Assembly (NCBI GenBank): GCA_047495785.1 | Contig: JBLDXI010000099.1 | Coordinates: 8,531 to 72,530, forward strand | Origin: Lepidodermella squamata | Taxonomy: Eukaryota > Animalia > Gastrotricha | Length of the DNA stretch: 64,000 bases | Direction: 5' to 3' | Shown here: positions 39,213 to 64,000 of the stretch, one piece after another | How positions within the stretch are numbered: the stretch's first letter is position 1 | Layout: every line of letters begins with the position of its first letter | Made by a program: the position numbers and the translations under genes | Notes under the pieces: model-generated | Told to the model about the DNA's origin: nothing | The model's input: only the letters and a program-made list of their open reading frames with translations | Databases searched by the model: none

Positions 39213-39291
39213 GATGTTGATGCTATGCCATTGTGTATACCCTTTTGACAGCGTCTCACATTGTGCAGTATAGCTTGAATGCCAAAACAGA

Positions 39292-39514: not shown

Positions 39515-39597
39515 AAGTTAAATTCCCAGTCTGGTACCTGAAATCCACTGGAATGAGTAAGGAACGAGTGAGCCTGTAAATTTATCAAAAACTAACT

Positions 39598-39632
39598 AGG
39601 TCCTGCCGAGAGTCGAACTCGGGTCGCTGGAT
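39598..39632 (-). pseudogene. 3' half of a tRNA-Gln gene, disrupted at the anticodon loop by an insertion
   Basis: aggtcctgccgagagtcgaactcgggtcgctggat aligns with the intact tRNA-Gln at 36900-36934 (aggtcccatcgagaatcgaactcgagtcgctggat); T-run terminator at 39587-39591; 5' half absent. Confidence 0.85.
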
Positions 39633-42600
39633 GGGGGCGCGATATGAGAGTTCCGAAGGAACGTAGTTCCTTACAAGTGTTTTACACATACGCCGTAGAT
39701 TACCACGAACGAAGTGAGATACCTTCCGAAAGGCACCCCCCGGGAACGAGTTGGTTAATAGGACATACTCAGATCAACTTACCCGATTTATGGTGGTATC
39801 CTGGACCCCTCAGGACCTCCCAGAAGTTTTTTCAGCTCAATCGGAGCTTCCGTTGATTTTCTAGAAATTAGGACGGTTTTTTCTTATTTTACCGTATTTT
39901 TTGGTCACGTGACCTGAAATGGGTAGTATATGAGGGGACAGTAGGAGGATATGATAGGTACACCAAAAAACAAACCACGCTGACCAAAGCTTCCCAGCCA
40001 GCTGACAGGCTGGCCCCTCGCCCCTGGGGGAGAGGGGCCCACAATAGATCAACAATGCAAGCTCGCGACTAAAGAGCAAACGACAAAAAGGCAATATAAA
40101 TAAAATGCAAGGTCAATTGAAAAGACGTGAGGCAAATAAATTGTGAATTATGCATTTAAAGCAACAGAATTACCCGTAATCGACTACGGAGAATCCGAAT
40201 ACGACATTCATTTTGTTAAAGCAATGATAATCCAATGATAATCACTTCAACAAATTTCGCGCTCGAGCAGCTGCGTTACGGACTACGGAGAATCCGAATA
40301 TGACATTTATTTCATTATCGAAATATGATAACCCATGATAACCCTTCAAACCATTTTCGCCCTCCTTTTACCCACTTTCGCCGCGCCACTTGCGTATTTT
40401 CACCACGAGTTGCGTATCTTTCACCACCTAACAACTTACGACGCATCACTGTTGAGGTAAGAAACTTCGAACAAGCACTTCAAATTATGCGCCACATCGA
40501 CCCATCGACATCGAGCTGCGTATCGCTGAGGACCATCTCATCATTGTTGTAAATTCAGTCATTCATGTACACTGATGATTGTTATACGTTATACGTATGT
40601 GTTCCTTGTGATATGAGTTCTTTGAGAACCTTGTGGAATATGTGTTAAACGTGATTCACCACAAAAGATCCGCCTTGAAACACAGCTAACTTACACTGCC
40701 TTTTTGTGTCCATTGCCATAGAAGGTGCATTTTGCACATTAATCTATGGGTTTACCCGTAATCGACTACGGAGAATCCGAATATGACATCCATTTTATTA
40801 TAAAGCAATCCTAACCCCATGATAATCCTTCCAATAATTTTCCAAAAATGTTCCGGCTCGCGCGGCTGCGCCGCACTCGCTGAAAGAGTTGCGTAACTTT
40901 AACCACCTTACAACTTAACGAATCCTCACCGATGAGGTAAGAAACTTGCAAGTGTGAATATGCACAGTTTCACATAGCAAAAACCAGCAAGTTGGACATG
41001 GCACCCCATTAAAAAACCAAATTAGCCAAATTAGCTGAACATGTTCTTTACGAAGAAATGTTTCATATTTCGACGTTTTCGTCATCAACAATTTTTTATA
41101 TTATTTAATTCAACCCTGCTTGATATTTTACAAACATTATTCGAAACTTCTAAGAAAGGTCCATAAAGTTTCACATTTCACAAAATGCATTTTTATTTTT
41201 CATTCATGCTACTACGAAGTACTAATGATAGCGCGGTACAATAACAAACACGTTGACATATGATATCTCAACGAAGCCGTCATTCACCAGATCTGGATAC
41301 GGAATCCTCGCCACTTAATTCAACGTTGATTAATATTTTGCAAACATTTTTCGAAACTTTTAAGTATCCCAGTAGGGTCCAAAAAGTTCAACATTTCCCT
41401 TGACAATACCCTCGGGAAGTAGCTGTAGCGCCAGTTTTTTCGAGCTGTACGGCTCTGTGATGCATTACTCAAATTTCGAACTCGTAAATGGGAGGGAAAC
41501 CAGATCCTTCACAACTTCACTGGTCTTCTTTTTATAACAAAATCATTCCATCCCATATCTTGCGTCACACGCCGCGTTCGCACGCGCATGATTGAGGTTG
41601 GAGGTCTTCGACTTTAAAATGATAACCCTACCAGCAATCCGTGCTAACGATTACGTCAGCCGGGAAAGTTCATCTTTTTCGGACCTTCATCAGCGGGAAC
41701 GATTACGTCTCATAAAAAAACTAGTTGTTCCCTTCCACGGTCCCGTATATTTCGCGTTGCAGAGATTGTGGATGTTCCCCAGGCAAAATTGAACTTTAAA
41801 GTACAAGTTCCCAACTGCCGTATCGCGCGGAATAATTACTGCAAAGGTTTACCTGCCATTCTCGTTATCACTTCTAAATAACGTAAAACAGTCTCGTATC
41901 AATTTCGTTGATTTTCGATTTTCACTACATTTAAGGAAAATATATAGTTGGTGCTTGACGTACCGAAAAATGAGTGTGTAGTCTGATTCAATGTTAGGGT
42001 TCGTATTGTTCGCTTTTAGAGCGGCGTCCTTTTCAAGCTTCACTTTCCGCCCCGTTCACTTTCAAAGGAAGGTCGAGGGTTCGAACCCAAGCTTTCGTTG
42101 AACTGCTCTCTAATGATTTCTGTCAACATGCTCTCGCTGTTGGCGATATTTGGTCATCGACTTCAATTCAACTTCAATTCAATCCTTGTCATTCAATTGT
42201 AACCTCAACAATTTGTTTTTCAAGAAATTACCGAAACTTCGGATAGTCGTTGGTTCGAACCCAAACCCTCGTTCAACTGCTCAGCAACGATTTCTTTCAT
42301 CCGTATGCTCTCAATCTTGGCGTTAACGTCGTTACCGAAATCGATTTACCTTGTACATGTTATTCAATCGCACCCTGCTTGAATTAGTATGCCAATTTTT
42401 TGAAAATTTAAAAGTTAAAAGGTCGAGGTTTCGAACCCAAGCTTTCGTTGAACTGCTTTGTGATGATTTCGTTCTCCTTCATGCAGCCAGAAGCTCTTGA
42501 CGTCTAAATGCTCTCGTTTTCGGCGTCAACGTCATTACCGAGATCGATTCAGTTTGTACATTCAATCGCTCCCTCCTTCAATTTTTATAACAATCTCGTC

Positions 42601-45600
42601 ATCAGTGACATGGATTCTACCAATTCATGTCATTCAATTGTTACCCCGATTAATTTTTACAACAAACCTATCGAAACTTCGAAACTTAACTTAAATTATA
42701 TTATCCAACCTTCATGTTTTGTTATTTGCGTTCTCGTCATCAGTGTCATCGATTCTCCCAATTCATGTCATTCAGTTGTTACCCCGATTAATTTTTACAA
42801 CAACCTCTCGAAACTTCGAAACTTTAGCTCAAACCTTCTTGTTTTGTTCTTTTTGCGTTCTCGTCATCAGTGACATGGATTCTACCAATTCATGTCATTC
42901 AATTGTTACCCTGATTGTTTTTTTACAACAAACTCTCGAAACTTCGAAACTTCAAAACATGGTCGTGGGTTCGAACCAGATTTCTCCTTTTTCTACTCAT
43001 CAATTTGTTCTTTAACCTTCACGCATTCGTTGTTGGCGTTTTCGTCATCAGCTACATCGATTCTACCAATTCATGTCATTCAATAGTTCTTTTGTTTGTT
43101 TTTCACAACAAAGTCTCACTTCAAAACATGGTCGTGGTTTCGAATCCGATCTCTGGTCGTTCCGCTCTCAAATTTTATTCTTCAACCTTCCTGTTTTGTT
43201 ATGTGCGTACTCGTCATCAGTGACATCGATTCTCCCAATTCATGTCATTCAGTTGTTACCCCGATTAATTTTTACAACAAATTCTCGGAACTTCGAAACT
43301 TGACTTAAATTATATTATCCAACCTTCATGTTTTGTTATTTGCGTTCTCGTCATCAGTGACATCGATTCTCCCAATTCATGTCATTCAATTGTTACCCCG
43401 ATTAATTTTTACAACAAACTCTCGAAACTTCGAAACTTCAAAACATGGTCGTGGGTTCGAACCAGATTTCTCCTTTTTCTACTCATCAATTTGTTCTTTA
43501 ACCTTCACGCATTCGTTGTTGGCGTTTTCGTCATCAGCTACATCGATTCTACCAATTCATGTCATTCAATAGTTCTTTTGTTTGTTTTTCACAACAAAGT
43601 CTCACTTCAAAACATGGTCGTGGTTTCGAATCCGATCTCTGGTCGTTCCGCTCTCAAATTTTATTCTTGAACCTTCCTGTTTTGTTATGTGCGTACTCGT
43701 CATCAGTGACATCGATTCTCCCAATTCATGTCATTCAGTTGTTACCCCGATTAATTTTTACAACAACCTCTCGAAACTTCGAAACTTTAGCTCAAACCTT
43801 CTTGTTTTGTTCTTTTTGCGTTCTCGTCATCAGTGACATGGATTCTACCAATTCATGTCATTCAATTGTTACCCTGATTGTTTTTTTACAACAAACTCTC
43901 GAAACTTCGAAACTTCAAAACATGGTCGTGGGTTCGAACCAGATCTCTCCTTTTTCTACTCATCAATTTGTTCTTCAACCTGCACGCATTCGTTGTTGGC
44001 GTTTTCGTCATCAGCTACATCGATTCTACCAATTCATGTCATTCAATTGTTAACTCGATTTTACAACATCTTCTCGAAATTTTATGAAAGCGAATAAATG
44101 TTCAACTACTCTTTAACGTGCATTCTTCTCTAAATATTTCCAAGCCATTCAAAAATACGTTGGACGGTTCCTGAGCGAACCCGAAATTACTACTTATCTA
44201 TAAACACCTAATCCGGAGAACATTCAAATTTACAATTCAATTTCATGTTTCATCAACATTGGGGTGAGGGGGAAGCACCGTCCCCTCCAACGACGTGGAG
44301 GGGATCTCGTAGGGGTGGTTCGAGTCCGTACCCATTACCCAGGAGAGTAGAGAAAAAGAAAGAAAAGGCTAGCGCAGCGTAAGCCTTGTCGAACTCTCCT
44401 GGATGGGGGCGCGACTCTGGGAGTTCCGAAGGAATGGGGGCGCGATATGAGAGTTCCGAAGGAACGTAGTTCCTTACAAGTGTTTTACACATACGCCGTA
44501 GATTACCACGAACGAAGTGAGATACCTTCCGAAAGGCACCCCCCGGGAACGAGTTGGTTAATAGGACATACTCAGATCAACTTACCCGATTTATGGTGGT
44601 ATCCTGGACCCCTCAGGACCTCCCAGAAGTTTTTTCAGCTCAATCGGAGCTTCCGTTGATTTTCTAGAAATTAGGACGGTTTTTTCTTATTTTACCGTAT
44701 TTTTTGGTCACGTGACCTGAAATGGGTAGTATATGAGGGGACAGTAGGAGGATATGATAGGTACACCAAAAAACAAACCACGCTGACCAAAGCTTCCCAG
44801 CCAGCTGACAGGCTGGCCCCTCGCCCCTGGGGGAGAGGGGCCCACAATAGATCAACAATGCAAGCTCGCGACTAAAGAGCAAACGACAAAAAGGCAATAT
44901 AAATAAAATGCAAGGTCAATTGAAAAGACGTGAGGCAAATAAATTGTGAATTATGCATTTAAAGCAACAGAATTACCCGTAATCGACTACGGAGAATCCG
45001 AATACGACATTCATTTTGTTAAAGCAATGATAATCCAATGATAATCACTTCAACAAATTTCGCGCTCGAGCAGCTGCGTTACGGACTACGGAGAATCCGA
45101 ATATGACATTTATTTCATTATCGAAATATGATAACCCATGATAACCCTTCAAACCATTTTCGCCCTCCTTTTACCCACTTTCGCCGCGCCACTTGCGTAT
45201 TTTCACCACGAGTTGCGTATCTTTCACCACCTAACAACTTACGACGCATCACTGTTGAGGTAAGAAACTTCGAACAAGCACTTCAAATTATGCGCCACAT
45301 CGACCCATCGACATCGAGCTGCGTATCGCTGAGGACCATCTCATCATTGTTGTAAATTCAGTCATTCATGTACACTGATGATTGTTATACGTTATACGTA
45401 TGTGTTCCTTGTGATATGAGTTCTTTGAGAACCTTGTGGAATATGTGTTAAACGTGATTCACCACAAAAGATCCGCCTTGAAACACAGCTAACTTACACT
45501 GCCTTTTTGTGTCCATTGCCATAGAAGGTGCATTTTGCACATTAATCTATGGGTTTACCCGTAATCGACTACGGAGAATCCGAATATGACATCCATTTTA

Positions 45601-48600
45601 TTATAAAGCAATCCTAACCCCATGATAATCCTTCCAATAATTTTCCAAAAATGTTCCGGCTCGCGCGGCTGCGCCGCACTCGCTGAAAGAGTTGCGTAAC
45701 TTTAACCACCTTACAACTTAACGAATCCTCACCGATGAGGTAAGAAACTTGCAAGTGTGAATATGCACAGTTTCACATAGCAAAAACCAGCAAGTTGGAC
45801 ATGGCACCCCATTAAAAAACCAAATTAGCCAAATTAGCTGAACATGTTCTTTACGAAGAAATGTTTCATATTTCGACGTTTTCGTCATCAACAATTTTTT
45901 ATATTATTTAATTCAACCCTGCTTGATATTTTACAAACATTATTCGAAACTTCTAAGAAAGGTCCATAAAGTTTCACATTTCACAAAATGCATTTTTATT
46001 TTTCATTCATGCTACTACGAAGTACTAATGATAGCGCGGTACAATAACAAACACGTTGACATATGATATCTCAACGAAGCCGTCATTCACCAGATCTGGA
46101 TACGGAATCCTCGCCACTTAATTCAACGTTGATTAATATTTTGCAAACATTTTTCGAAACTTTTAAGTATCCCAGTAGGGTCCAAAAAGTTCAACATTTC
46201 CCTTGACAATACCCTCGGGAAGTAGCTGTAGCGCCAGTTTTTTCGAGCTGTACGGCTCTGTGATGCATTACTCAAATTTCGAACTCGTAAATGGGAGGGA
46301 AACCAGATCCTTCACAACTTCACTGGTCTTCTTTTTATAACAAAATCATTCCATCCCATATCTTGCGTCACACGCCGCGTTCGCACGCGCATGATTGAGG
46401 TTGGAGGTCTTCGACTTTAAAATGATAACCCTACCAGCAATCCGTGCTAACGATTACGTCAGCCGGGAAAGTTCATCTTTTTCGGACCTTCATCAGCGGG
46501 AACGATTACGTCTCATAAAAAAACTAGTTGTTCCCTTCCACGGTCCCGTATATTTCGCGTTGCAGAGATTGTGGATGTTCCCCAGGCAAAATTGAACTTT
46601 AAAGTACAAGTTCCCAACTGCCGTATCGCGCGGAATAATTACTGCAAAGGTTTACCTGCCATTCTCGTTATCACTTCTAAATAACGTAAAACAGTCTCGT
46701 ATCAATTTCGTTGATTTTCGATTTTCACTACATTTAAGGAAAATATATAGTTGGTGCTTGACGTACCGAAAAATGAGTGTGTAGTCTGATTCAATGTTAG
46801 GGTTCGTATTGTTCGCTTTTAGAGCGGCGTCCTTTTCAAGCTTCACTTTCCGCCCCGTTCACTTTCAAAGGAAGGTCGAGGGTTCGAACCCAAGCTTTCG
46901 TTGAACTGCTCTCTAATGATTTCTGTCAACATGCTCTCGCTGTTGGCGATATTTGGTCATCGACTTCAATTCAACTTCAATTCAATCCTTGTCATTCAAT
47001 TGTAACCTCAACAATTTGTTTTTCAAGAAATTACCGAAACTTCGGATAGTCGTTGGTTCGAACCCAAACCCTCGTTCAACTGCTCAGCAACGATTTCTTT
47101 CATCCGTATGCTCTCAATCTTGGCGTTAACGTCGTTACCGAAATCGATTTACCTTGTACATGTTATTCAATCGCACCCTGCTTGAATTAGTATGCCAATT
47201 TTTTGAAAATTTAAAAGTTAAAAGGTCGAGGTTTCGAACCCAAGCTTTCGTTGAACTGCTTTGTGATGATTTCGTTCTCCTTCATGCAGCCAGAAGCTCT
47301 TGACGTCTAAATGCTCTCGTTTTCGGCGTCAACGTCATTACCGAGATCGATTCAGTTTGTACATTCAATCGCTCCCTCCTTCAATTTTTATAACAATCTC
47401 GTCATCAGTGACATGGATTCTACCAATTCATGTCATTCAATTGTTACCCCGATTAATTTTTACAACAAACCTATCGAAACTTCGAAACTTAACTTAAATT
47501 ATATTATCCAACCTTCATGTTTTGTTATTTGCGTTCTCGTCATCAGTGTCATCGATTCTCCCAATTCATGTCATTCAGTTGTTACCCCGATTAATTTTTA
47601 CAACAACCTCTCGAAACTTCGAAACTTTAGCTCAAACCTTCTTGTTTTGTTCTTTTTGCGTTCTCGTCATCAGTGACATGGATTCTACCAATTCATGTCA
47701 TTCAATTGTTACCCTGATTGTTTTTTTACAACAAACTCTCGAAACTTCGAAACTTCAAAACATGGTCGTGGGTTCGAACCAGATTTCTCCTTTTTCTACT
47801 CATCAATTTGTTCTTTAACCTTCACGCATTCGTTGTTGGCGTTTTCGTCATCAGCTACATCGATTCTACCAATTCATGTCATTCAATAGTTCTTTTGTTT
47901 GTTTTTCACAACAAAGTCTCACTTCAAAACATGGTCGTGGTTTCGAATCCGATCTCTGGTCGTTCCGCTCTCAAATTTTATTCTTCAACCTTCCTGTTTT
48001 GTTATGTGCGTACTCGTCATCAGTGACATCGATTCTCCCAATTCATGTCATTCAGTTGTTACCCCGATTAATTTTTACAACAAATTCTCGGAACTTCGAA
48101 ACTTGACTTAAATTATATTATCCAACCTTCATGTTTTGTTATTTGCGTTCTCGTCATCAGTGACATCGATTCTCCCAATTCATGTCATTCAATTGTTACC
48201 CCGATTAATTTTTACAACAAACTCTCGAAACTTCGAAACTTCAAAACATGGTCGTGGGTTCGAACCAGATTTCTCCTTTTTCTACTCATCAATTTGTTCT
48301 TTAACCTTCACGCATTCGTTGTTGGCGTTTTCGTCATCAGCTACATCGATTCTACCAATTCATGTCATTCAATAGTTCTTTTGTTTGTTTTTCACAACAA
48401 AGTCTCACTTCAAAACATGGTCGTGGTTTCGAATCCGATCTCTGGTCGTTCCGCTCTCAAATTTTATTCTTGAACCTTCCTGTTTTGTTATGTGCGTACT
48501 CGTCATCAGTGACATCGATTCTCCCAATTCATGTCATTCAGTTGTTACCCCGATTAATTTTTACAACAACCTCTCGAAACTTCGAAACTTTAGCTCAAAC

Positions 48601-49236
48601 CTTCTTGTTTTGTTCTTTTTGCGTTCTCGTCATCAGTGACATGGATTCTACCAATTCATGTCATTCAATTGTTACCCTGATTGTTTTTTTACAACAAACT
48701 CTCGAAACTTCGAAACTTCAAAACATGGTCGTGGGTTCGAACCAGATCTCTCCTTTTTCTACTCATCAATTTGTTCTTCAACCTGCACGCATTCGTTGTT
48801 GGCGTTTTCGTCATCAGCTACATCGATTCTACCAATTCATGTCATTCAATTGTTAACTCGATTTTACAACATCTTCTCGAAATTTTATGAAAGCGAATAA
48901 ATGTTCAACTACTCTTTAACGTGCATTCTTCTCTAAATATTTCCAAGCCATTCAAAAATACGTTGGACGGTTCCTGAGCGAACCCGAAATTACTACTTAT
49001 CTATAAACACCTAATCCGGAGAACATTCAAATTTACAATTCAATTTCATGTTTCATCAACATTGGGGTGAGGGGGAAGCACCGTCCCCTCCAACGACGTG
49101 GAGGGGATCTCGTAGGGGTGGTTCGAGTCCGTACCCATTACCCAGGAGAGTAGAGAAAAAGAAAGAAAAGGCTAGCGCAGCGTAAGCCTTGTCGAACTCT
49201 CCTGGATGGGGGCGCGACTCTGGGAGTTCCGAAGGA
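39631..49236 (+). repeat. Tandem duplication of a 4,803 bp non-coding unit (39631-44433 and 44434-49236); probable non-autonomous rolling-circle element copies
   Basis: ORF track repeats identically at offset 4803; no credible protein; each unit starts atgggggcgcgatatgagagttccgaagg. Confidence 0.9.
42065..44090 (+). repeat. Complex tandem repeat of ~125-180 bp subunits containing B-box-like GGTTCGAACC (second copy 46868-48893)
   Basis: Repeated cgtcatcagtgacatcgattctcccaattcatgtcattca...cgaaacttcgaaac...ggtcgtgggttcgaacc. Confidence 0.85.
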
Positions 49237-50032
49237 ACGCCAGTTCCTTTACACGTGTTTTACACATACGCCGTAGATTACCACGAACGAAGTGAGATTT
49301 CATCCCAACAGGGGGGCCCGAGAACGCGTTGGTTAACAGGACATTCTCCGATGAAGCCGCCCGATTTATGGTAGTATCCTGGACCCCTCAGGACCTCCCA
49401 GAAACTTTTTCAGCTCTAACGGACCTTCCGTTGATTTTCTAGAAATTAGGACGGTTTTTTCCTATTTTACCGTATTTTTTGGTCACGTGACCCGGAATGG
49501 GTAGTATATGAGGGGACAGTAGGAGGATATGATAAGGACACCAAAAAACTAACCACGCTAACCAGAGTATCCAAGCCAGCTGACAGGCTGGCCCCTCGCC
49601 CCTGGGGGAGAGGGGCCTACAATAAATCAACAATGCTAGCTGGCGACCAAAGAGCAAACGACGAAAAGGCAATATACGTAAAAGTCAAGGTCAATTGAAC
49701 AATTCTGCGGCGAATAAATTGTGCATTTTCCATATACAACAATAGGTTTACATGTAATCGACAACGGAGAATCCGAATATGACGTTCATTTTGTTATGAA
49801 GCAATTATAACCCAATGATAGCCCCTCCAACTAATTTTTCTGTTCACTGCTATGGAGTTGGCATGGTTATATTTTTTATTAAATAACATAATGCAGTTCA
49901 AGTTTCAGGGCTCGAAGTTTTAAAGCACATTTTCAAGTGAGCGGTTCAATAACGCACTGTCTTATTTCCATATTCATATGCATGCGCAGAAACAAAAAAA
50001 AATAATAATAACAATAAAAAATTAAAAGAAAA

Positions 50033-50108
50033 TGTGTCGCGGCCGGGACTCGAACCCTCCATTAACTGCATTTCACAACGTTACACTGAAACCACTCGGC
50101 CACAACAC
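50033..50108 (-). ncRNA. tRNA-like Pol III small RNA gene (non-canonical)
   Basis: Reverse complement GTGTTGTGGCCGAGTGG (A box)...GGTTCGAGTCC (B box)CGGCCGCGACAC; ~12 bp terminal stem, then T-runs; no proper anticodon stem. Confidence 0.5.
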
Positions 50109-50841
50109 ATCTGACATATCCATCGCAAATTAAATTTCAATTAAATATTCAACGAAATTATCAAAACAGTTTCCAGCGCCTTCCGGGAATCGGACGCGTC
50201 TCTATATAATTTATTCACTATATAATTCGCTACGCAGTGGTTCGGAAGGCAGTGGTTCGATTGCTGCTCACATCACATTTTTCCTTCTCATTTTTTCTTC
50301 TTAAAATCAGATTTATTTCTGTTTAATTTTTTTGCAGAGTGAGCAATAAAAAATAAACGTTTACCATTCACGTGAATCTTCATGAGTACAAAGTGCATGC
50401 CTGTCATATGGCCGACACGCGATTCAGCATCAGCTGTTTCACGGCGCAGCGGCGGCAACAGCAAGCAGACGGTTCGATCCGGTATTCAACCATCATTCAC
50501 AACGATTTATTTCTCTTCAAAACAACCTCTATTTCCCTAATCATTAGAATTACTTATGCTGCCAGCTCCTATCAATCTATCTTCCGCTCGAATCGATAAC
50601 ATTGTGACAATGTTGCTCTCTCAGGTTTGCTAGTATATTATTCCCAGTTCATATCACCATTCCCACTATAATTACAGCTACTGGATGAAATGGCGATTTC
50701 AACACTGTTGTCCACTTTGGTTTTCCATGGTCACTACTCCCTACCAGAAAGCGGTGAGTACATTATTTTCCTCATTCATTTTTTTTACTATTGTAAAATT
50801 TATTGATTTTTTCATTCATTAACACGTTTTTTTTGCTCCCC

Positions 50842-52785
50842 AATATTTTCTTTCGTCGTTATGCTCCCGTATTCGACGTTTTCGCCATCAGCAACGTCGA
50901 TTCCACTAATTCATGTCATTTAATTTTACCCTGATTTACTTTTTTCAAGAATTTTTTCAAACTTTGAAATTCCAAACCAAGGTCGTAGGTTGGTGCCCGA
51001 CCTCTCATTTTTTCGCCCTCAAATATTTTCTTTCATCGATATGCTCCCGTTCTCGACGTTTTCGCCATCAGCAACGTCGATTCCACTAATTCATGTCAAT
51101 TAATTTTACCCTGATTTACTTTTTTCAAGAATTTTTTCAAACTTTGAAATTCCAAACCAAGGTCGTAGGTTGGTGCCCGACCTCTCATTTTTTCGCCCTC
51201 AAATATTTTCTTTCATCGATATGCTCCCGTTCTCGACGTTTTCGCCATCAGCAACGTCGATTCCACTAATTCATGTCAATTAATTTTACCCTGATTTACT
51301 TTTTTCAAGAATTTTTTCAAACTTTGAAATTCCAAACCAAGGTCGTAGGTTGGTGCCCGACCTCTCATTTTTTCGCCCTCAAATATTTTCTTTCATCGAT
51401 ATGCTCCCGTTCTCGACGTTTTCGCCATCAGCAACGTCGATTCCACTAATTCATGTCAATTAATTTTACCCTGATTTACTTTTTTCAAGAATTTTTTCAA
51501 ACTTTGAAATTCCAAACCAAGGTCGTAGGTTGGTGCCCGACCTCTCATTTTTTCGCCCTCAAATATTTTCTTTCATCGATATGCTCCCGTTCTCGACGTT
51601 TTCGCCATCAGCAACGTCGATTCCACTAATTCATGTCAATTAATTTTACCCTGATTTACTTTTTTCAAGAATTTTTTCTAACTTTGAAATTCCAAACCAA
51701 GGTCGTAGGTTGGTGCCCGACCTCTCATTTTTTCGCCCTCAAATATTTTCTTTCATCGATATGCTCCCGTTCTCGACGTTTTCGCCATCAGCAACGTCGA
51801 TTCCACTAATTCATGTCAATTAATTTTACCCTGATTTACTTTTTTCAAGAATTTTTTCAAACTTTGAAATTCCAAACCAAGGTCGTAGGTTGGTGCCCGA
51901 CCTCTCATTTTTTCGCCCTCAAATATTTTCTTTCATCGATATGCTCCCGTTCTCGACGTTTTCGCCATCAGCAACGTCGATTCCACTAATTCATGTCAAT
52001 TAATTTTACCCTGATTAACTTTTTTCAAGAATTTTTTCAAACTTTGAAATCCCAAACCAAGGTCGTAGGTTGGTGCCCGACCTCTCATTTTTTCGCCCTC
52101 AAATATTTTCTTTCATCGATATGCTCCCGTTCTCGACGTTTTCGCCATCAGCAACGTCGATTCCACTAATTCATGTCAATTAATTTTACCCTGATTTACT
52201 TTTTTCAAGAATTTTTTCAAACTTTGAAATTCCAAACCAAGGTCGTAGGTTGGTGCCCGACCTCTCATTTTTTCGCCCTCAAATATTTTCTTTCATCGAT
52301 ATGCTCCCGTTCTCGACGTTTTCGCCATCAGCAACGTCGATTCCACTAATTCATGTAAATTAATTCTACCCTGATTTACTTTTTTCAAGAATTTTTTCAA
52401 ACTTTGAAATCCCAAACCAAGGTCGTAGGTTGGTGCCCGACCTCTCATTTTTTCGCCCTCAAATATTTTCTTTCATCGATATGCTCCCGTTCTCGACGTT
52501 TTCGCCATCAGCAACGTCGATTCCACTAATTCATGTCAATTAATTTTACCCTGATTTACTTTTTTCAAGAATTTTTTCAAACTTTGAAATCCCAAACCAA
52601 GGTCGTAGGTTGGTGCCCGACCTCTCATTTTTTCGCCCTCAAATATTTTCTTTCATCGATATGCTCCCGTTCTCGAAGTTTTCGCCATCAGCAACGTCGA
52701 TTCCACTAATTCATGTCAATTAATTTTACCCTGATTTACTTTTTTCAAGAATTTTTTCAAACTTTGAAATTCCAAACGAAGGTCA
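50842..52785 (+). repeat. 180 bp tandem repeat (~10.8 near-identical copies)
   Basis: Sequence lines recur every 180 nt (ttcgccatcagcaacgtcgattccactaat...). Confidence 0.97.
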
Positions 52786-53039
52786 TTTTTTTGAATTTTA
52801 GAATTTCGGAAATTTATATTAGCATTTCATTTTTTTTTATTTTTTCTCTTTTTTACCAGTTTGCGAATCGAATGACCGATGTTGCACATGCTGTAATCAA
52901 ATGGCTGAAAACGATTTCAAGACGAAGTGATTTGTGATTTTTCAAACGTGCTACTTCATTTGAACGTTGTTTACCAGCTTTGCTGTATGATGCTTTTTAA
53001 ATTATATTGTTCCAAACCCCATTTTCGCTGACCCAGGCA

Positions 53040-53325
53040 GTAATAGGGTAGAGATGCCGTCTCAATGCCCGGCTATGCAGTTAAATAGCCAACCGACGTT
53101 GGAATAGTCGGTATAAACTTCCACCGTCCCGGCTCAGACGGCGAAAACGACCACGTCTTGGTGAGACGGTAAAAAAAACTCCGACAAGGCAAGGTCGGTA
53201 AAAAACTTCCAAAATGTCCGCAGGGCTGAGCGACCAGCGCCCTCACTGTGATTCGTCACAAATACTAAGCTGGAAGGGAACCTATGACGATCTGTCAGGC
53301 ATCTTCGGATCCGAGGTTTCTCCCC
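53040..53325 (+). ncRNA. Unclassified, highly structured RNA (or ssDNA) element upstream of the RepHel gene
   Basis: At least eight adjacent GC-rich hairpins, including two UUCG tetraloops, within AT-rich flanks. Confidence 0.55.
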
Positions 53326-53484
53326 GATATTTCAATTATTGATGTGCATTGGTAATTTCAATAAAATATGTTTTTCATTTCAATATATTTTTTTTAATTG
53401 ATGTTCTTCATTCCATTCGCATATGGTGTTATTTTTTATTTATCTAGTTTTATGATGACAATTTTGTGATTATGAACTGGAATC

Positions 53485-56400
53485 ATGGTGAAACCGCCTA
53501 ATTGGAAGCCAAAATCGAAGGGATCGCGTAAGTGTTCCTTTTGCAAACGGAAAGGTGTTCGAATCTCAACCCACTGCGGACTACTCAATTGCTCTAAAGC
53601 TAAAGGGCAACACCATCCCAAGCCGTGCATTAAGGTTCAACCTCCACAGTCCGCTTCTCAGTCCAATTGTATGTTTTCCTAATCAATCAGTTATATATGT
53701 TTCATCTGTTTTTACACAGCCACGTCGTGTTCGCATGTTGGCGAATCTTTATCGGTAGCTCCATCCTCACTCACTGTTCAGAATACGTCTCAGCAGTCGT
53801 TGATATCTCAAGGCTTGTTCTTGTTATTCATCCTCAAATTGTATAAATTTGCGATAAAATTTCCCCATAGGTAGCGGCGCTGTTCTGACTGCTTCGGAGC
53901 AATTGTTGGATTCTCAAGGTCAGTAATTTTTATTTCTCAACTATAACTTGACATGTGGCTGTGCCGTTCCAGCTGTTCCGGCTACCCGGGAAGATCCGCT
54001 GCCACCTCCGGGTTAGTTGTTAGATTGAGATTTATTTCATGTCTTGAGCGAATACCACTAAGCTCTTTTAAGAATTATAAGAATTGAAGAGGTGTTAACA
54101 TATGATTGTTATGTCATTTAGTCTTGTCAAATAATATTTTCAGGCGCTTCTTTGAACGAACGGCAGGAATCTAGCGCGCCTGCAACACGTCAGCCAGTAA
54201 CTCAGCCATCTTGTCCAGTATGCGGCGCAAAAGGCAGGAAGTATCTGACCCACTGCGACAATGAGGAATGCCGGATTAGTGGCCGCGGGCATCACGCTAA
54301 TCCCTGTTTCCAGTTGGAACGACCCGGGCTACAGGCCGGTGTAAATCTTGAGCAGCAACGTAAGTATTATCCACCGGGTAACAACCTTTCATAAATAATG
54401 ATTCATTTAGCTGTGGCGTCCTCTGGAGCTGTTGCTGCTACGTCACAACGGTCGCTGCCATCTATAGGTTAGTTATTTAATCAAGAATTGTGCTGCCTGG
54501 TGTTAACTAAAACTGCTGTTTGTTGCAGCTAGTGGTGGTTCTTCTAATGCACCTATTCTATGTGACAACTGCAGAAGACGATCGGTGCCCTTTTTCGACA
54601 TCGACATTGCTGTCGTGGAAGAGCCGGTATCTGGACGCAGCTATGGTGCTCTAGGACTAAGGAAAGTCTATGAAAACTGCTCGTTATGCCGTTGTTGCCG
54701 TCACTATTTGCGCAACGGCGATGCTCGTTTTCCCGCCGGATGGCCAGCCCTTGTTTATAGCCTTTTCTTCAAAGCAGCGAATAGGCACCTAGCAGAGGCC
54801 CTCTCTAACTACATATCGCCGCTCATGAAAATGATGTGGAGCGAGGTCGACGGCTCAAATGTTATGCGGGACTCGCAGCCGTGTTTCGTTGACAAGACAC
54901 GTGATCTGGCTGATTTCATGGCCAATATCTACAAAGACGCAGGTATTCTATCAACCTACTAAATGAGTATACGAATGCAGTTTTTTTTTTAATTGCAGGA
55001 GGATTCAGTTACGCGCTAAACATGTACCCAGTGCCCGACGTGATATGTCCGCAAGGTTGCCTCGCTTTCATGGAGAAGTGCCAGCTAATCCCGTACCATC
55101 ATTTGATCCAACATGTCACTGGCAGCAATTTCTTCGATTCCGACTTGCGCTGGTTCGAGTCAAGGAGACCCGACTGGCCGTGCAACCCAGTGCCTTTCCT
55201 CGCTTGGGATTTCGCTGCTGCAATGGTCATGGACGAGACAAAGGGCCTATGCATCCTTGCCTGCATTGACCACAGCAAGCCGGACCTGTTTTCCATGTAC
55301 CTGCATCTCCCTGCGAATCCCGAGTTCGACCGGTTCCACGATCCGCAGCAGACCGAAATCTATGCACCCGTGCACGTGCAGCCCAATTTCGTCAGAGGCG
55401 GGCGAGTCGGTCAGTCGAACGCATCAGTGCCAGTGACAAAAACTCTGGGTGATCAATTAGGTGTCGGCAGCTTTACATTGCGTGGTGCTCACTCGGCAAA
55501 TCGCAAGGCTTTGAGCATGTACGCCAGCGCCTTTAAGCCACACCTTTTGGCCTTGCGATATCGTCCTGAGATTCGCAACACCGCGATCAGCAGATTTGGC
55601 GAGGAACACGTGGCTCACGTTCTTGCTGATTTTGATCAGCATTGCCCAACTGCTGTCGTGAGAAACCATGTCAAGGGTGGCACTTTCATCGAGCTAGCTG
55701 ACTGTTACTTCACCTGGGCTATTCGCCGCAAAATCGCGACAGGTCAGTACATTTCATTCTTAATCTACTACTATAGATTAGACTCAACAGAATTAGCACT
55801 GCATTAATTTTGCTGATAGTGATAGCCTTGTAATCGGGCCCTGCACTGAATTTTAGATGCGTTTTGTCCAATATAAAATTCTCCAATATAAATGGTCAAA
55901 GAACGGATGTAGCAACTGTAGTAGAGTATCGCGCGGGATAACCACTGCAAATTATTATGTAGTGTACTTCGGGAGGATAAGATTAGGCCGATCGAACTGC
56001 TCCAAATTCTCGATATAATAAACAAATATAGAGATACTAAGATTCAAGCGCATTAACAATTCATCATCGATTCCTACGAATTGTCTCATTTCGTCCTTCT
56101 TTATTTTAGGAAGTGATTCGTCGAAAAAAGGGAAAACACCTTCAGAAGCCGTGATCTTCAATCCGGTTCACCCGAACGATGATCATGGCTTAATCCCCTG
56201 GGCGTTCAAGTCGGGTCAAGGCGACAACCCTAGTCAGCTCCTGACACTGGTTGCCAACGTCGTTTCGTTGTGCCGCCCTGTGTACCGTGCGGCGTTGAGT
56301 CATCTAGTGCTTGGCAGTCCCGATTTAACACGCGTCGACATCGGTGACTTGCTCAGTCATACTGTTTCGCTGCCGCGCCCGAAAACCCCTCGTACTCTGA

Positions 56401-59400
56401 ATTTGTCGCATCTGGCAAGGGACTTCTGGTCACTGACAGAACCCGAAAGTGATAGCGGATCTGACGATGACGAAGAATCCCCCGATGTCGTTACGCGGGC
56501 ATTAACTTTGATTGGGAGAGTTACTGCGCCGATTAATGATGTCGAGTTGTCGTTTGCTGGATCTCATCTTTTAGCGATAAGAAAGGGGCAAACCATGGAC
56601 GGCGAAAGAAGGAGTCTCCGAAGTCATGGTGAGTGTTTTATTCATATTTTGGCAATTATTGCTGCATTATTAGACGTTGTGGTGATACATATCATGATCT
56701 TGGGTCCTGAATTTCAAAATTTACTGGTTTTAATCAAAAATTGAAACAACAAAAAATTGAGGGCTCCCATTCAAGTTATAATGACGTAAATCTTGAAATA
56801 TTGAGTAATTTTCAAATCGTTTGATTCATACCTAGATAACCCTTGTTTATTTCGTGTTGACAGTGGGTAGGGTGCTGGTCATCCACGGAGGTCAATCTCA
56901 GCTGCTGACCGAATACCAGACTTCGCATGAGCTGCTGATGTGCCGACCCGAAGGTGCCTTGCCGATCAATTGGCCCGCATTGCCCTTGTCGCTGAAAGCT
57001 GGTCATCACCTGCTACTTGCCCGCGTCAAGTTTGGCTCGAAATCCTACATCGTTTTTCGATGGTCGCCTAGCTTCAGTGGCTGGTGGACAGTAGAGCCTA
57101 GCGGGCGAGTGGTTCGTGGTGTCAGTGATCAGCACATGCGCTCTGACGTCCAATTTGCGATTTACGCTCTGCCTGGCAACCAGACGTTCTGCAATCAAGC
57201 CGTCCGTCAATCGCTCGGTGGTCAAAGCAAGGCTGCCTGCGAAATGCATTTCGACTCTGTCGAGTTCAACTTCACTCTTATGAAAGTGCCGGTGAAACAT
57301 AAGGTGAAGTGTTGCATGCGATCACCGGGAAGAGCCAATCAATGCGGCAAACCTGCTCAGTTGCGCTGTCCTGCGGGCTTGCAGAATGGCAGCTTGTCGT
57401 GCAGTGTCGGCATCTGCACGCGGTGCTTCAAGAAGCTTCCAGCGGACGGTATCACCAAGCTCTCAGCGCCTGACTTTCTGCCTGATGTGCCTGAAGATGC
57501 TGAATTGCAACTGTCAGCTAGCAGGGCATCGAACTTGGAAGCTCAAGCCGACGAGGTTCCGCCGCAGCCTGAGCAGCTTCATTTGGCTACTGATATTCAA
57601 TTTCCTCGAGGCGATGCTGAGCCGCTGTATGATCCGACCAAGGGTATTCTCGCCAAGTATCTCTGGCAGCACTTGGGAATTCTGCAGCGAACCAGGCTCG
57701 CTTTCGATTCTGCCCAGAAGTCTTTTCTACTGCAGCAGATGGTTGCCTTCGGAGATGCCCCTGCTACTTCCATCTTGTACCCGGAGGGTGCTCTGTTTCC
57801 GTCACTTTTCTATTGCCAACGTGATGGCAGTGTTGTTGGTGCTTTGCCTCACCATCACTACTCGTCCTACAACTCCGACTATACAGGTGGAATCGGCTCC
57901 CTGTCTGATCATGTCAAAGTCAGGTTGCGCAACTTCTTCTTGGCAACAAGCTGGTCGTTTGCGTCAATCTACTTCTCCTTTGACATGAAGCTATCGGCGC
58001 AGCTGAACAAAAACAGCACTGCAATCTTCATGAAGCGTGGGACAGAAGGCCTGGCAGGTAAAGGCGCTGTTGGCTGGTCTCCTCCTGGCACGGCTCTCGA
58101 ATACGAGGAGTTCGACAAGGAGTCGAGGCTGAAAGAGCTTGGCGCCCTAATCAAGCATGAAGAATGGAAGTGGTTCGGGACAATTACTTGTAATGATACA
58201 GGTTAGCACAAGTTTTGGTATTCAATCTCACTCAATTGTAGACTGAATAATTTCTCCAAGAATTGTTTGAAATTTGAAATTTTACCACCTCGACCTACAC
58301 AATGCATTATTTTTCAATTCCAGGCACACCTGGTGTATGTGAAATCGTCAAAGCCCTTATGATAAACGCTCAAAGGCACCATGGTCCACGCCCTGTTCTG
58401 TCGAAGGCCGACTATCAGCGAACTTTTCGTCAGCGTCTGCTCCTTGTTTCAAGGCTTGACGAGACCGAGTACAAGCGGCTGTACTACGCCCATTTCATCC
58501 TCATCAGCATGGCTTGGCAACGAGTGCAGGAGCATCTGATCGAGTTCCTGAAGCGCACGAATGTTGTTGGCACTGTCACCACTATTTTCGTCAGGAACGA
58601 ATTTCAGAGCGAATCACTCGTTGGCAACAAAAGTCATCTGCATATGGGCATTTCAGTACGCGAAAGCCGGGCAGAACTGCTGGAGAAAGTTTGCTGTGAT
58701 CCTCGTGAATTCTTCTCGGAGCGGTACGGCACGTCATTCGACGAGCTTCAGCGCTTGAGGTTGGTCGAGAGCCGAGATCACTTCGAGCTGCTCAAGGAGG
58801 TCCATTACCCCTTCCAACGTCACGAATGCGAGAAAGCGTTTTGGAAATGTCAAGTTCCACGCGGCGAAGGAGGGGAAATGGTTTGCCGAGTTCGCCAGCA
58901 CGGCGTCTCCAGCAGCGGCTATTTCGAAGAATTCCGCAACGTGTACTCCGAGGATACCCTGAAAGAGCTGCAATCCCTAGACCTCGCCAGAGAAGTGCCC
59001 AATCCCACTGGCGACTTTGACTGGGAATTTCTGGCTGATCAGCTCAAGTCGGGCGTGTACCACTACGCGATCAAGCATCTCGAGAAGGGCGTGAAGTTCA
59101 TTCCGCAAATCCCGATCATCGCGGCAATGATGGGCGGCTCCACGAACTTTCAGATATGCGATTCTCATTTCAGCGTATCTTACCTGACGAGCTACGTTGC
59201 CAGCTCCGACGCTCGCCCTGAAGCTTACGCTGCAACGACAGATGTTCCGGGCCAAGTCGTTGCTTTGTTCCCTGCTGGTTTTGAGCGAGGTCAAAAGCTT
59301 GCTAGTGTTCGGTGAGTAATATCTTTGCACTTCAATTGACTTGAAAAACTTTGATGTTTTTAGGAAAGTGATGGAAGCGAAGCTGAAGCATTTCCGTCGA

Positions 59401-62400
59401 GAAAGCATGCAGAGCTTTATCTTCATCGCCTTGACAGAAGTTGCTTGGTTCGCGTTGGGGTTTCCCTACACCATCACGAATGTCGGTTTCGTACACATCA
59501 ACACACACCCACCAGCTTCGCGGCTAATGTTGTGGCGACCGAAAGAAGCAGTGAAAAAGCGACTACCGGGTATGCTCTTGAGAATAGTTATTGTGATTAT
59601 TTTCAAATAATATTCCAAAAACAGGTACAGATGTAGTTGCTGTCGACCCAAACTACAATCGCCGGGGCCTGCCTCAGTGGCGCTTGTTCACGGAAGCATG
59701 CATTCGTCTGATCATGAAAATGAGAGGCACGAATCTGCTAGCTGGCCCTGTCGAGAAGTTCGAGATTCGACCTCCCGAGGCTCGTATCTTTGCGTCACCT
59801 GCTATCTATCACGCGGTGTTCGTCATCGACCGGAAAAACCGACGACCATACAACCCGATGGTCGATCCTTACATCCGTTTTTTCGACGGCTTCAAGCGGG
59901 AGGTCCGAATCAACGATTGCAGTTTGCGCATCGCGCTCGACTATCTGGCTCAGCAGGACCAATCCAATGCAGCCGTTCAAGCACTCACGGAAATTTTCGA
60001 ACTCTTGGTCGAAGGCGATCCTGTCTATGTTGACCGGTAACGATCTTTACGTTTTTATAATTTTCGGAATATTTCAAATGTACGCTGAACTAGGTACTTG
60101 CACGTCACAAATAAGGCGGCGATAATTCCAGTCCTATCCACCATCTCTCCGCTCAACCGCTTCAACTTCTTGTATCACGTCGTCATGACGTTTGGTCGAA
60201 TCGAAGATGAGGCTACTACCTTTCCGGCTGGGCATCTCCGGGCGGCATTTGTTCGATCGGGGCTCATTCGGGTCAATCCTGAAGGCGAGCCGACCAACCT
60301 TCCTGCCGACGTGAGGTCTCTGAAGCGTCGCGTCATTCTCGAAATCTTCGCTTTCCTGCCAATCGGTGTCAAGAGATTCGATTTTTACGTCGCCACTCTG
60401 AAATCCATGTTCGAGCAGTTTTTCTTTGGCGATGGAGGCACCGACAATCTCTCGGCACTGACTGACTGGGATGCGATTGAACGGGAAGTTGACGAGGATA
60501 TTGTCCGAGCGGAAGGAGAAATGAAGCGGTCTGTGGTTGAGGTGACGCATTCGCAGCTTGTCGGGAAATTGCCGCTACCACCGCTGTCGGATTTCACTGA
60601 CGCTACATCGTGTCAACCTTTGGAATGGATTCCGAGTCTTCAACGACAACCAGGTCAGTCGGACCAGTCTTTCCAGGAGCAGCAGGCGGCTCTGGCTTTC
60701 GGTATGAAGACACTCGAACGCTTCCGAAGCAGAGCTAGCTTCAAGCACATCGCACTGGTTGGTCCTCCTGGGGCTGGAAAGACAACGCTGGCGCAGATCC
60801 TTGCCATGGTTGCCGTTTCTAAGGGACTACGAGTTGTCATTACTGCTTTGACCTCGGAGCGAGCACGAGTTCTTGGCGGTCGGCACATCCACCTGCTTTT
60901 TCCTTTGCCGGTTAAGCAAATACCGTACAAAAATGTAATGGCGTATGCTGACGGCTGCCTCAAGAATCTGTGTTTCAAGACTACGCCGTCTGTTGTCCTA
61001 TATCGGGCTGACGTCTTCATCATCGAAGAAATTGGGCTGGTCTCTGCTGAAACCCTGGAAATCTTGGACACAGTTATGAGGAGTCTTACAGGTAAGCAAA
61101 CCAGCATTCAATTATTACTGGTATTTATAGTTTTCATTAGGAGTCGATGCGAAAATGGGTGGCAAATTGATCATTGCTACCGGGGACTTTGCTCAGCTCG
61201 AGACGATCAATGGTGAGAGTTGATTTATTGCAATACTAACATGTATATTGTATTTGTTTTTTTTAATTATCCCAGGTCGATCCTTTTGGGAATCAACACA
61301 ATTGTACCTCAGCTACGACGTCGCATTGTTGAAACATTTCGTTCGGGCTGCCACTGACCCGCTACTCCAGCGGGTGCTGTTGATTTTGCGGCAAGGCGTT
61401 CTTGACGAGATTGACCGGGACTTCATCCTCAAAGCTGTGACTAGAACGTGCAACTTTTACGACACTTGGGACAACGTTCCGTTCCTTGTCCAGCGGATCG
61501 TCCCAACAAGAGAAGCTGAACAAGAGGTTAGTTGGAAACGGAAAATTTTGGTGATCACTCTTGCCTTTCATTAATTGATCAGGTCATTCGGAAGTTCCTG
61601 CAAGACGCTAGTCTCAGTGGCAAGACTTTGAAAACAGCTCTATGCATCGACGAAGTAAACACGCGTGGTGCCTGGGAACCTCTTCACCGTCCCGAATGGA
61701 AAAAAGCTATCAACAAACAGTCACTCAAGCCCGAGAACTTAACGCTCTTTGTTGGTGCTGTGGTTGCTATGACCTACAATCACGTAGCGTCGAACCCGCA
61801 ACACTCCTTCTCCCAAGGGCAGCTAGCTCTGGTGACGCAGTTGCCGGAAGACATGGCCGCACCGGATGCCAAAATTTCTGTCCGCTTGGTTCCTCCAGGG
61901 CTGCGTGACATTGCACCAGATGAGGCTTGGCCAGAAATAAGTGTGGGCCGGCATCGGGACGATAACATTGTTGTTGGCGACAACAAAACGCACCTGCGTC
62001 GTGTTCAGTTTCCGCTGCGGCATTACATTGCCTCGACTATTCATCGTGAGTGCTAACCTTGTTTTTATATTCAAGTATATAAAAATGTTAATTGTTTTCA
62101 GGAATCATGGGTTCTACCTGCGAGAACGGCGTTGCAGCCAAGATTGCTTCCAACGAGAAGGTACGTATTGCGAACAATAACTGTGGATATTGATATGTTC
62201 AATGTACTGTAATGAAGGGCTACGTGCTATGGGAACGGGCGCAGCTTGCTGTCATTCTCTCGCGGTGCCGTTCACTTGACCGTGTGTCATTTGTTGGCGA
62301 ACGCGCAGACATCACTGTGGCCATCGAAAGGCTGTTGATGGCAGTCGATGAGCCATACGAGGCTATCGTCGCATCGCTGCAAACGCTGGACGTGCTGCCT

Positions 62401-63352
62401 ACCTCAACAGTCGCCAGTAACTGGTCAGCCGGACGACAGCAGCAGGTCAGCGACCCCGACGAACTGCCCGACATCACGTTCCGCGTTTTACGAACAACTT
62501 CCGGGTTAGTCCACTTACTTATTTGGCTCTTTGTATAGTCAACTCACTAATTGCGTATGTCCCATTATATATCGAGTCTTGACAGTTCATATTTCTATAA
62601 CCATTTTATTATATTTCAAAATAGAATAAGTCGAACGTTTTCAAGAAAATTTTTCTTATAGATCATTCACGATCGAGCAGCTTGGCGATGCTCAAACTTC
62701 CATCCCATTGTAAGTATGGCATTGTTCATCTGCTTTATATACTATTCAAAACTTCTTCATAGCCCTGCAACCGTTGACCAGGCAAGCTCCTCCGATGCGC
62801 CTGTTGTCCCACGGTTAGTATAACCTATCAATTCCATTTCATTGCTTCAAATTCTGCTCAATTTATCAGAGTGCCGACATTGTTGGACTTCTACCGCGTC
62901 GTCGGTCCTGATTTGTCGGAACGCGAGCCCAATGGCGTCGTTTATCAATTGGTGGAGGTGGCTCAGCCGTGGGCCAGCTACTTTGGCGAAACCGAGCAAG
63001 CGCCTCTACAGCGACTTTATGACCACAATCACAGTAAATACAAGAGAGACTAAAAAAATCGAACTGCTAACATTTGATTTCAGATGCAGGGGCCGCGATG
63101 ACTCGCGGCAAGCAATGGCATTTGTACGCCGTCGCTCGTGGCTTGCCTGATGACGAAACCAGGTTGAACCTGGAGAAAAGGTGCCAGGACCTAATTACAG
63201 CGCAACCTGAGCTTTTGCCGTGGCAAGTTAGGACCAAGTTTGAGTCCTACGTGGACGACATCAACGCTCGCCTGCATGGGTCCACTGCTGTAATTCGTTA
63301 CGGCGAGTTGGACGAGGCTAAGGTTCACCGCCTGCGTACGATCTCCTTGTGA
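53485..63352 (+). CDS. Large intron-rich RepHel-like transposase: Cys/His zinc motifs, HUH Rep endonuclease, Pif1/RecD-type SF1B helicase and C-terminal GIY-YIG nuclease (~2,600 aa; exact 3' end uncertain, may extend to ~63460)
   Basis: Rep motifs WFGTITCN, RNEFQ...SHLHM, QRHEC...C, NFQI...YLTSYVA. Helicase motifs GPPGAGKTT, IIEEIG, GDFAQL, QFPLRHYIASTIHRIMG, LAVILSR. GIY-YIG motif GVVYQL...YFGET...RLYDHN...GAAMT. More than 20 exons with GT-AG introns. Confidence 0.85.
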
Positions 63353-64000
63353 GTCAGCTGATGGATGTCATTCTTTTTACTCAATCCTTTCACTTTTCAG
63401 CACGTCGACAATTAGAGTAGCACCGGCGCCACCGTCAGCGCAAGAAGAAGCAGGTGAACTAATCGACCAAGATCCGCCCCCAAAGCGGTAAATAGATTTA
63501 AGTTCACATTTGCTTGTAGCTTTTTACTATTATTTTCAGAATTCATCTCGCAAATAATTGTTCGCCGTCTTGATGTTTCTGCCGATCTTCCGATAAATGA
63601 AATGTTCCAATTCAATGTTTTTCCTAGTAGTAGCCAATAAACGTATTGCACTTTTTCTAATAGTGTTTATTGAATCAGAGTTATCAGATCGACTTGACTT
63701 AATATGAATCAAATCGCCACGAAACCGTAATTTGTCTGATCCTTGTGCTTCGTCCATTATATAATTTTTCTAAAAGATTACCTAAGCTGATTGCCATGCT
63801 CTTGGCTCTGTGGCAACCGAACCATATTCATCTCACAAGTTGGCACTACAGTTGCTTCCGGAACCCACCATAAAGATGACAGGTCTTAGTTTCAAGTTTT
63901 TCCATTGCATCACCATTGCTAAATCAAAATCCATCAAATAAAAATGCTTCCCTGCGTAAATCTATAATTTCAAATCTTAATCACGGAAAATAAGGTTTAT

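Follow-up and report, generated by a model that had tools for sequence, protein, structure and literature searches.

A head-to-tail array of Helitron-like elements with a GIY-YIG nuclease domain in an interrupted tRNA-Gln gene of the gastrotrich Lepidodermella squamata

In a 64,000-nucleotide stretch of the genome of the gastrotrich Lepidodermella squamata (contig JBLDXI010000099.1 of assembly GCA_047495785.1, positions 8,531 to 72,530; hereafter the window), a tRNA-Gln gene breaks off at its anticodon loop and gives way to transposable element sequence that occupies positions 39632-64000 throughout. The first-pass annotation had described such an interruption, followed by more than 24 kb of element sequence reaching the window end. 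The interruption is borne out by a perfect 3' half of the gene whose homology ends at 39631/39632, and the extent of the element sequence holds as well; self-comparison, however, divides this sequence into three elements lying head to tail, not one. Their junctions point to a single site that was used repeatedly and that resembles an end of the element itself. We consider it an even call whether three Helitron-like elements were stacked in this way, all entering one phosphodiester of the tRNA-Gln gene, with a Rep nuclease that finds its targets by end mimicry. The locus thus described hints at targeted insertion at a tRNA-Gln position, which one locus cannot prove.

The host side of the first junction is the remaining part of the tRNA gene.

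39598-39632, minus strand: 3' half of a tRNA-Gln gene, ending at the boundary between anticodon loop and stem and followed by a TTTTT terminator

This half comprises the 3' strand of the anticodon stem (TCCAG), the variable loop, a T arm whose strands pair perfectly (CCGAG with CTCGG), the acceptor strand and the discriminator T. It adjoins the last gene of a host tRNA cluster, in the same orientation and at the spacing that is normal for the cluster. The idea that the tRNA half is a component of the element was rejected in view of its completeness, correct pairing, terminator, spacing and orientation. Because 5 positions distinguish it from the intact tRNA-Gln-CTG gene of the cluster (36899-36972), it is a separate paralogue of that gene. 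The homology to tRNA stops exactly where the left end of the element starts, and the same point, 39631/39632, marks both the start of the homology between units A and B described below and the boundary of a 4803-bp repeat unit. When the missing 5' half (expected antisense TTCA[A/G]AGTCCAGAG...) was searched across the window, the sole match was the intact gene, and a permissive Rfam scan of 39500-54500 gave no tRNA-like matches.

The array itself consists of two short units, A1 and A2, and a long element, B.

39632-44403, plus strand: unit A1, non-autonomous, 4772 bp, with a left end in common with B, a unique part, satellites and a right-end stem-loop ending in CTGGA
44404-44434, plus strand: 30-31 nt copy of the first left-end bases of element B (variant b), between A1 and A2
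44435-49206, plus strand: unit A2, non-autonomous, identical to A1
49207-64000, plus strand: element B, autonomous, extending past the window end
49207-49837, plus strand: left-end region of B, matching the first ~630 bp of unit A at 87% identity
44339-44403 and again 49142-49206, plus strand: right terminal structure of unit A, whose end reads CTGG-A

As it is without coding capacity, unit A is a non-autonomous derivative of a B-like element. The two copies are held in 4803-bp repeat units (39631-44433 and 44434-49236) that show 0 mismatches, an identity that reflects either a very recent event or a wrong assembly. Homologous unequal crossover between the left ends of A and B was considered as the origin of A1 and A2 and excluded, the junction not being an in-register hybrid. 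Between the two copies, positions 44404-44433 repeat the first 30 nt of B without a difference and stop at a small hairpin (TTCC-GAA-GGAA). We read this short copy of the B left end as a probable 3' transduction carried by A1. The right end of B is not in the window, and nothing after 63349 resembles the right end of A.

Each of the three left ends (TGGGGGCGCG...) has CTGGA directly before it, so that the junction CTGGA/TGGGGGCG (the slash marks the boundary with the element) is found three times, at 39627, 44399 and 49202. In the first of these junctions CTGGA belongs to the anticodon stem of the tRNA, and in the other two it forms the final five bases of unit A. An uninterrupted tRNA gene would read GGA/TTC at this place, which makes the left junction A/T; the first T of the left end may equally be the loop T of the tRNA, in which case the junction would be GGAT/T, that is a T/T dinucleotide. 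The left end starts with TG, not with TC.

At the opposite terminus, the last 65 nt of unit A form a stem-loop that closes one base before the end, with an outer 10-bp stem (44339-44348 paired with 44393-44402) and an inner hairpin (44367-44385). Its DNA fold has a z score of -4.1, and 0 of 200 shuffled sequences folded as well. Just upstream of CTGGA, the right end of A (44388) and the tRNA half (39612) have in common the 9-mer GTCGAACTC, a coincidence that simulation gives a probability of ~3e-4 near the junction. In the tRNA, this 9-mer is the antisense of the unusual T loop of the broken gene, and the other Gln copy is without a match. Read in antisense, tRNA-Gln thus looks like a right end of the element, with a hairpin, a short spacer and CTGGA in the same order.

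Bacterial transposons suggest how such a likeness could act. The families IS91/ISCR and IS200/IS605 (IS608) use a single-strand HUH chemistry, their target is a short sequence equal to the one at which the element's own end is cut, and read-through of the terminator picks up flanking sequence. By analogy, Rep of the present element would cut and join single-stranded DNA at CTGGA/T, the sequence of its own right-end/left-end junction, and would therefore prefer targets that resemble its own right end, a hairpin followed by CTGGA, in the logic of IS91 and IS608. In tRNA-Gln, the antisense T arm together with the anticodon stem would serve as the right-end mimic, and the element would favour both tRNA-Gln genes and the junctions of resident copies, hence building stacks. 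The insertion bond would lie on the plus strand, antisense to the tRNA, where CTGGA of the anticodon stem meets the first T of the loop. The GIY-YIG nuclease would probably nick the other target strand, a role proposed by analogy with the apurinic/apyrimidinic (AP) endonuclease assumed to act in Helentrons. The bacterial transposons are prokaryotic and have a small transposase with neither a fused helicase nor GIY-YIG, and the comparison would be a mechanistic one only.

The order of events could then have been the following. B would have inserted first into the tRNA gene, and A would have followed between the tRNA CTGGA and the first T of B. Replication from A would have passed its right end and halted 30 nt into the left end of B, at the small hairpin acting as a cryptic terminator. 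The resulting product, A with 30 additional nucleotides, would have re-inserted at the same bond, between the tRNA CTGGA and the resident A, as A1. Read-through and re-insertion in the style of Helitrons is the simplest reading of the origin of A1. Helitrons that come to lie head to tail through insertion where a host A meets an element T are documented in maize and bats (PMC2267711), and the possibility that a tRNA hairpin terminates a Helitron has been raised (PMC10701932).

The assignment to Helitron-like elements in the broad sense comes from the gene of element B, which encodes Rep, a Pif1-like helicase and a C-terminal GIY-YIG domain.

54122-63349, plus strand: multi-exon gene of B, ~14 open segments, colinear with the relatives P0001, P0003, P0004 and P0011 (tblastn)
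58165-59312, plus strand: Rep (HUH nuclease) domain, from alignment A1 and from profile and fold matches to Helraiser
60089-62053, plus strand: Pif1-like superfamily 1 helicase domain, from Pfam (AAA_30 and PIF1), PDB matches to Pif1 and to the Helraiser helicase, and tblastn
62934-63349, plus strand: GIY-YIG nuclease domain, in the last two exons, with a ~50-nt intron at 63034-63083

For each gap between the segments there is an in-frame GT-AG intron that would close it, several with a length of 50-60 nt, and the gene is for this reason plausibly intact. Motif I of Rep (TITCN) ends the exon 58165-58203, the HUH histidines (HLH) lie at 58635-58643 and the tyrosine motif (YLTSY) at 59181-59195. 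An alignment of 20 relatives has invariant HUH histidines, a zinc-finger-like cluster of histidines and cysteines, the tyrosine motif Y-x-x-K-Y and motif I as TLTCN; TITCN, HLH and YLTSY of the window fall on its invariant or near-invariant columns. In the PDB, the Rep profile finds Helraiser (E 4e-4), and the same motifs line up. An AlphaFold model of Rep (predicted local distance difference test, pLDDT, 76.8) has as its top Foldseek match Helraiser bound to its left end (7lcc, probability 0.99), which is also the sole credible fold match. The Pfam family Helitron_like_N gave no match at all on the window protein, the gathering score not being reached; 19 of the 20 relatives match this family, down to E 4.9e-9, and four lower-ranked relatives pass the cut-off. 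We see in the missing match a limit of sensitivity rather than counter-evidence to homology.

Downstream of Rep in the same gene, the helicase carries a Walker A motif (GPPGAGKT) near 60740. Pfam gives the GIY-YIG domain of the window a weak match (E 0.12); the domain aligns to the Pfam-significant GIY-YIG of P0003, the relative from Styela clava (BLASTP E 7e-7). Both a rolling-circle RepHel gene and an extra GIY-YIG nuclease had been put forward from a first look at the letters. The first is confirmed by the alignment, the profile and fold matches to Helraiser and the tblastn colinearity, the second by the alignment to P0003 and by the position of GIY-YIG at the C-terminus in 15 of 30 relatives. 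The N-terminal exons of B contain cysteine-rich stretches resembling zinc fingers (54152-54394 and 57300-57500), and the ~1200 amino acids upstream of Rep are without a Pfam domain yet colinear with the relatives.

These relatives were collected with HMMER, using the 337-amino-acid exon 58302-59315 of Rep as a single-sequence query against 1.84 billion representative proteins. Only 123 matches were obtained, the best 34% identical and many of them 1500-3600 amino acids long. Relatives stem from the ostracod Cyprideis torosa, the tunicate Styela clava and, among metagenomes, eukaryotic contigs of JGI, ENA and Logan. Some carry an N-terminal OTU domain, and the AP endonuclease (Exo_endo_phos) was found in 0 of the 39 relatives scanned. 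They form a small and divergent clade of Helitron-like proteins in which GIY-YIG takes the position of the AP endonuclease. Tandem repeats surround several relatives. Two related RepHel-GIY-YIG copies from the sample ERZ25074608 (L002 7863-20106 and L011 4776-17052) are colinear over 12.3 kb at ~90% identity and have repeats of ~1.3-kb period on each side; the ends of this relative could not be defined from the pair, the 1.3-kb repeats reaching the sequence edges. A repeat-embedded or arrayed organisation may be common in the clade.

Further traces of tRNA genes lie within the elements.

50036-50108, minus strand: degenerate tRNA-derived sequence in B, with A and B boxes, a paired acceptor stem and, downstream, a long T-rich run
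42693-44051 and again 47496-48854, plus strand: satellite block of unit A, periods 127-169 bp, 486-bp higher-order repeat, with a T-arm-like motif in the monomers
50828-52784, plus strand: 180-bp satellite of B, 10.9 copies that are 98% alike, ~74% related to the satellite of unit A
42069-43973, 46872-48776 and 50979-52650: copies of the T-arm/B-box-like motif

The tRNA-derived sequence of B is too degenerate to be called by ARAGORN or Rfam and may be a captured tRNA gene from a cluster. The T-arm/B-box-like motif (GGTCG..GGTTCGAA..) is present in 26 copies, each at the same place within its satellite monomer, in A as well as in B; these motifs could be relics of tRNA genes or sites of TFIIIC type. 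Together, the tRNA-derived sequence and the satellite motifs would fit a history in which the elements picked up flanks of tRNA clusters. The non-coding parts of the elements (40000-54000) have in addition a strong, sustained negative GC skew (-0.09 to -0.29) and a mostly negative AT skew, which are absent from the host part and from the coding region of B.

Several observations weigh against targeting by end mimicry. All evidence comes from a single host site, whose three junctions are mutually dependent, and the right flank, the expected place of the tRNA 5' half, is beyond the window. The intact tRNA-Gln-CTG gene 2.7 kb away has the same CTGGAT (36929) yet carries no insertion, and 12 other CTGGAT sites in the window are likewise empty. 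The termini differ from canonical Helitron ends by their TG start and the extra A after CTGG, and between the left 200 nt and the right 435 nt of A no terminal inverted repeats were found beyond 8-nt chance matches. The 100%-identical 4.8-kb pair could be an assembly artefact or a tandem duplication at the GGA microhomology, and A2 may have entered the left end of B with a 30-bp target duplication. Other copies of the family were found in none of the collections searched (by Rep exon look-up, by a 450-amino-acid exon and by HMMER). The left-end pattern had 0 matches in a metagenome scan, and a search for related loci with a 6-sequence Rep alignment returned two short contigs only. Around 11 loci of distant relatives (10 distinct places), no tRNA, tRNA fragment or other Rfam RNA gene was present in flanks of up to 10 kb. 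This last negative is a weak one because the reach was 10 kb, whereas the tRNA half of the present locus lies 14.5 kb upstream of the B gene.

Part of these observations would be accommodated if the first element had hit tRNA-Gln by chance, through a Helitron-type insertion at A/T, with later copies stacking locally at the resident left end and no preference for tRNA at all. The transposase would bind and nick the resident left end, host A and element T would re-create A/T each time, and the likeness between right end and tRNA would be coincidental. Such stacking alone needs no recognition of tRNA, because head-to-tail Helitrons arising through the host-A/element-T junction have already been described in maize and bats (PMC2267711). 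The junction is A/T here too, the nearby tRNA-Gln-CTG is empty and the related places that were fetched are without a nearby tRNA. On the other hand, tRNA genes offer very little target to a first hit at random, B and the satellites contain tRNA-derived sequences, and the 9-mer with CTGGA common to the right end of A and this very tRNA has the low chance probability given above (p ~3e-4). The shared 9-mer is the sole observation that stacking by itself leaves unexplained. We regard a chance hit followed by stacking as a serious possibility, though one that falls clearly short of even chances. End-mimic targeting can be taken a step further, to a RepHel and GIY-YIG lineage that is truly site-specific for tRNA-Gln and reads the antisense T-arm hairpin and CTGGA as a mimic of its own right end; this stronger form we advance tentatively and consider somewhat doubtful.

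A dedicated tRNA-gene homing element, whose GIY-YIG domain recognises tRNA-Gln DNA and for which multicopy tRNA genes are a safe harbour, was the version put forward in the first-pass annotation, whose interpretation as a whole is partly supported; the homing reading itself seems unlikely to us. GIY-YIG homing endonucleases can be site-specific, while in Penelope-like elements the same type of nuclease gives a weak target preference. The insertion does sit in a tRNA-Gln gene, GIY-YIG is conserved in the transposase of the clade, and the Dada elements are a precedent for DNA transposons that target tRNA genes (PMC3706591). However, a second host site is absent, and the GIY-YIG-bearing relatives show no association with tRNA within the flanks searched, a test that would have missed the tRNA half of this locus as well. 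The sequence CTGGA, common to right end and target, points to the Rep nuclease and not to GIY-YIG, and nothing in the window links GIY-YIG to the choice of target. That no transposition took place, with a rearrangement or assembly join breaking the tRNA and a collapsed or expanded repeat or a replication-slippage duplication producing A1 and A2, is very improbable: the 100% identity of the two units across 4803 bp, the GGA microhomology at the duplication boundary and the position of the right flank outside the window would suit it, but the break matches to the base an element terminus defined independently at 44434/44435 and 49206/49207, with which a random break would coincide at roughly 1 in several thousand positions.

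Compared with known systems, the element combines features of several. The choice of target by Helitrons is thought to need little more than a dinucleotide. With canonical Helitrons (HLE1, Helraiser), the window protein shares Rep motif I, the HUH motif and the two tyrosines followed by a Pif1-like helicase, and Helraiser is its best PDB match for Rep by sequence profile and by fold. The hairpin near a CTRR-like right end (CTGG), the left junction of host A and element T, and the apparent read-through (3' transduction) and head-to-tail stacking of unit A also recall HLE1 (PMC2267711). The left end with TG instead of TC, the extra A after CTGG, the missed Helitron_like_N threshold and the presence of GIY-YIG set it apart, and three insertions at one site within a tRNA gene would be a non-canonical behaviour.

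Helentrons (Helitron2, HLE2) are similar in having a RepHel with an extra nuclease after the helicase and, as in some of the relatives, an N-terminal OTU domain. The terminal palindrome at the right end of unit A and the ambiguous junction base, which makes a T/T insertion possible, would be further points of likeness. Their non-autonomous derivatives, the HINEs (DINE-1, oyster Cg_HINE), likewise share ends with the autonomous elements and carry central satellite arrays (PMC7492417). The extra nuclease of the present element is, however, GIY-YIG and not the AP endonuclease (Exo_endo_phos) that defines Helentrons, no short terminal inverted repeat was found in unit A, and Rep is highly divergent (123 matches in 1.84 billion proteins).

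Among the papers that a search for Helitrons together with GIY-YIG returned, the sole GIY-YIG-bearing Helitron-like family is HelenSM92 of Sphagnum magellanicum, reported in the HELIANO paper (PMC11417382). The authors treat GIY-YIG as a domain captured by a single plant family, whose insertion sites are TT and whose inverted repeats are short (PMC11417382). By that description, the elements studied here differ in that GIY-YIG is C-terminal in half of the 30 relatives, including a tunicate and metagenomes. As for tRNA genes, Dada elements are eukaryotic DNA transposons found at fixed positions of multicopy tRNA and small nuclear RNA genes (PMC3706591, PMC8869645), and no other DNA transposons are known to target tRNA genes (PMC3706591). 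They differ by their DDE transposase, inverted repeats and target duplications, and by a targeting that is proven from many copies. Our element is best seen as a Helitron-like member of a barely described GIY-YIG-bearing clade, with a suggestive but unproven site specificity.

The host side of the window is that of an invertebrate genome.

35750-39514, mixed strands, the final five genes all minus: host cluster of 22 tRNA genes, from ARAGORN and Rfam (54-70 bits)

These 22 genes are packed into 3.8 kb; ARAGORN, run in bacterial mode, called 21 of them (35750-39514) and Rfam one more. The latter detects an intron-bearing, Tyr-like tRNA with a GTA anticodon (38781-38866, minus strand) that ARAGORN misses in this mode. 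The cluster also holds a tRNA-Ser(AGA)-like pseudogene (37186-37260, minus strand), whose first 63 nt are 97% identical to the Ser-CGA gene; it has an 8-nt deletion in the T loop followed by a terminator T run, and was missed by both programs. About 2 kb to the left of the cluster lies a long interspersed nuclear element (31433-33614, minus strand) with long open reverse-transcriptase and AP-endonuclease reading frames. Left of the array, the host genes encode an arrestin-domain protein, a tetraspanin, WAPL and a mitochondrial carrier. The carrier exon reaches at best 55-60% identity, with matches from mussels, a bryozoan, a brachiopod and comparable animals, and a human origin of the window was rejected on this ground. 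The arrestin reading frame gave no match in an exact-protein look-up, nor in a word-indexed search run at a too strict E-value. A GC-rich block (~60% GC, 12200-14300) has long overlapping open reading frames on both strands and is without Pfam match or tandem repeats.

The locus displays the building of arrays, the movement of satellite DNA and the pickup of flanking sequence in one place. The recurrence of RepHel-GIY-YIG proteins in a tunicate and in environmental eukaryotic contigs makes them a candidate third solution for opening the target, beside no nuclease and the AP endonuclease. If targeting at tRNA-Gln is true, the element would be the first target-specific Helitron-like element and would add a second class of DNA transposons, after Dada, for which tRNA genes are a safe harbour. 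It would also mean that HUH/RepHel transposases can be sequence-specific in eukaryotes, and would provide a natural single-strand 'end-mimic' rule for the choice of target that is relevant to targeted DNA insertion.

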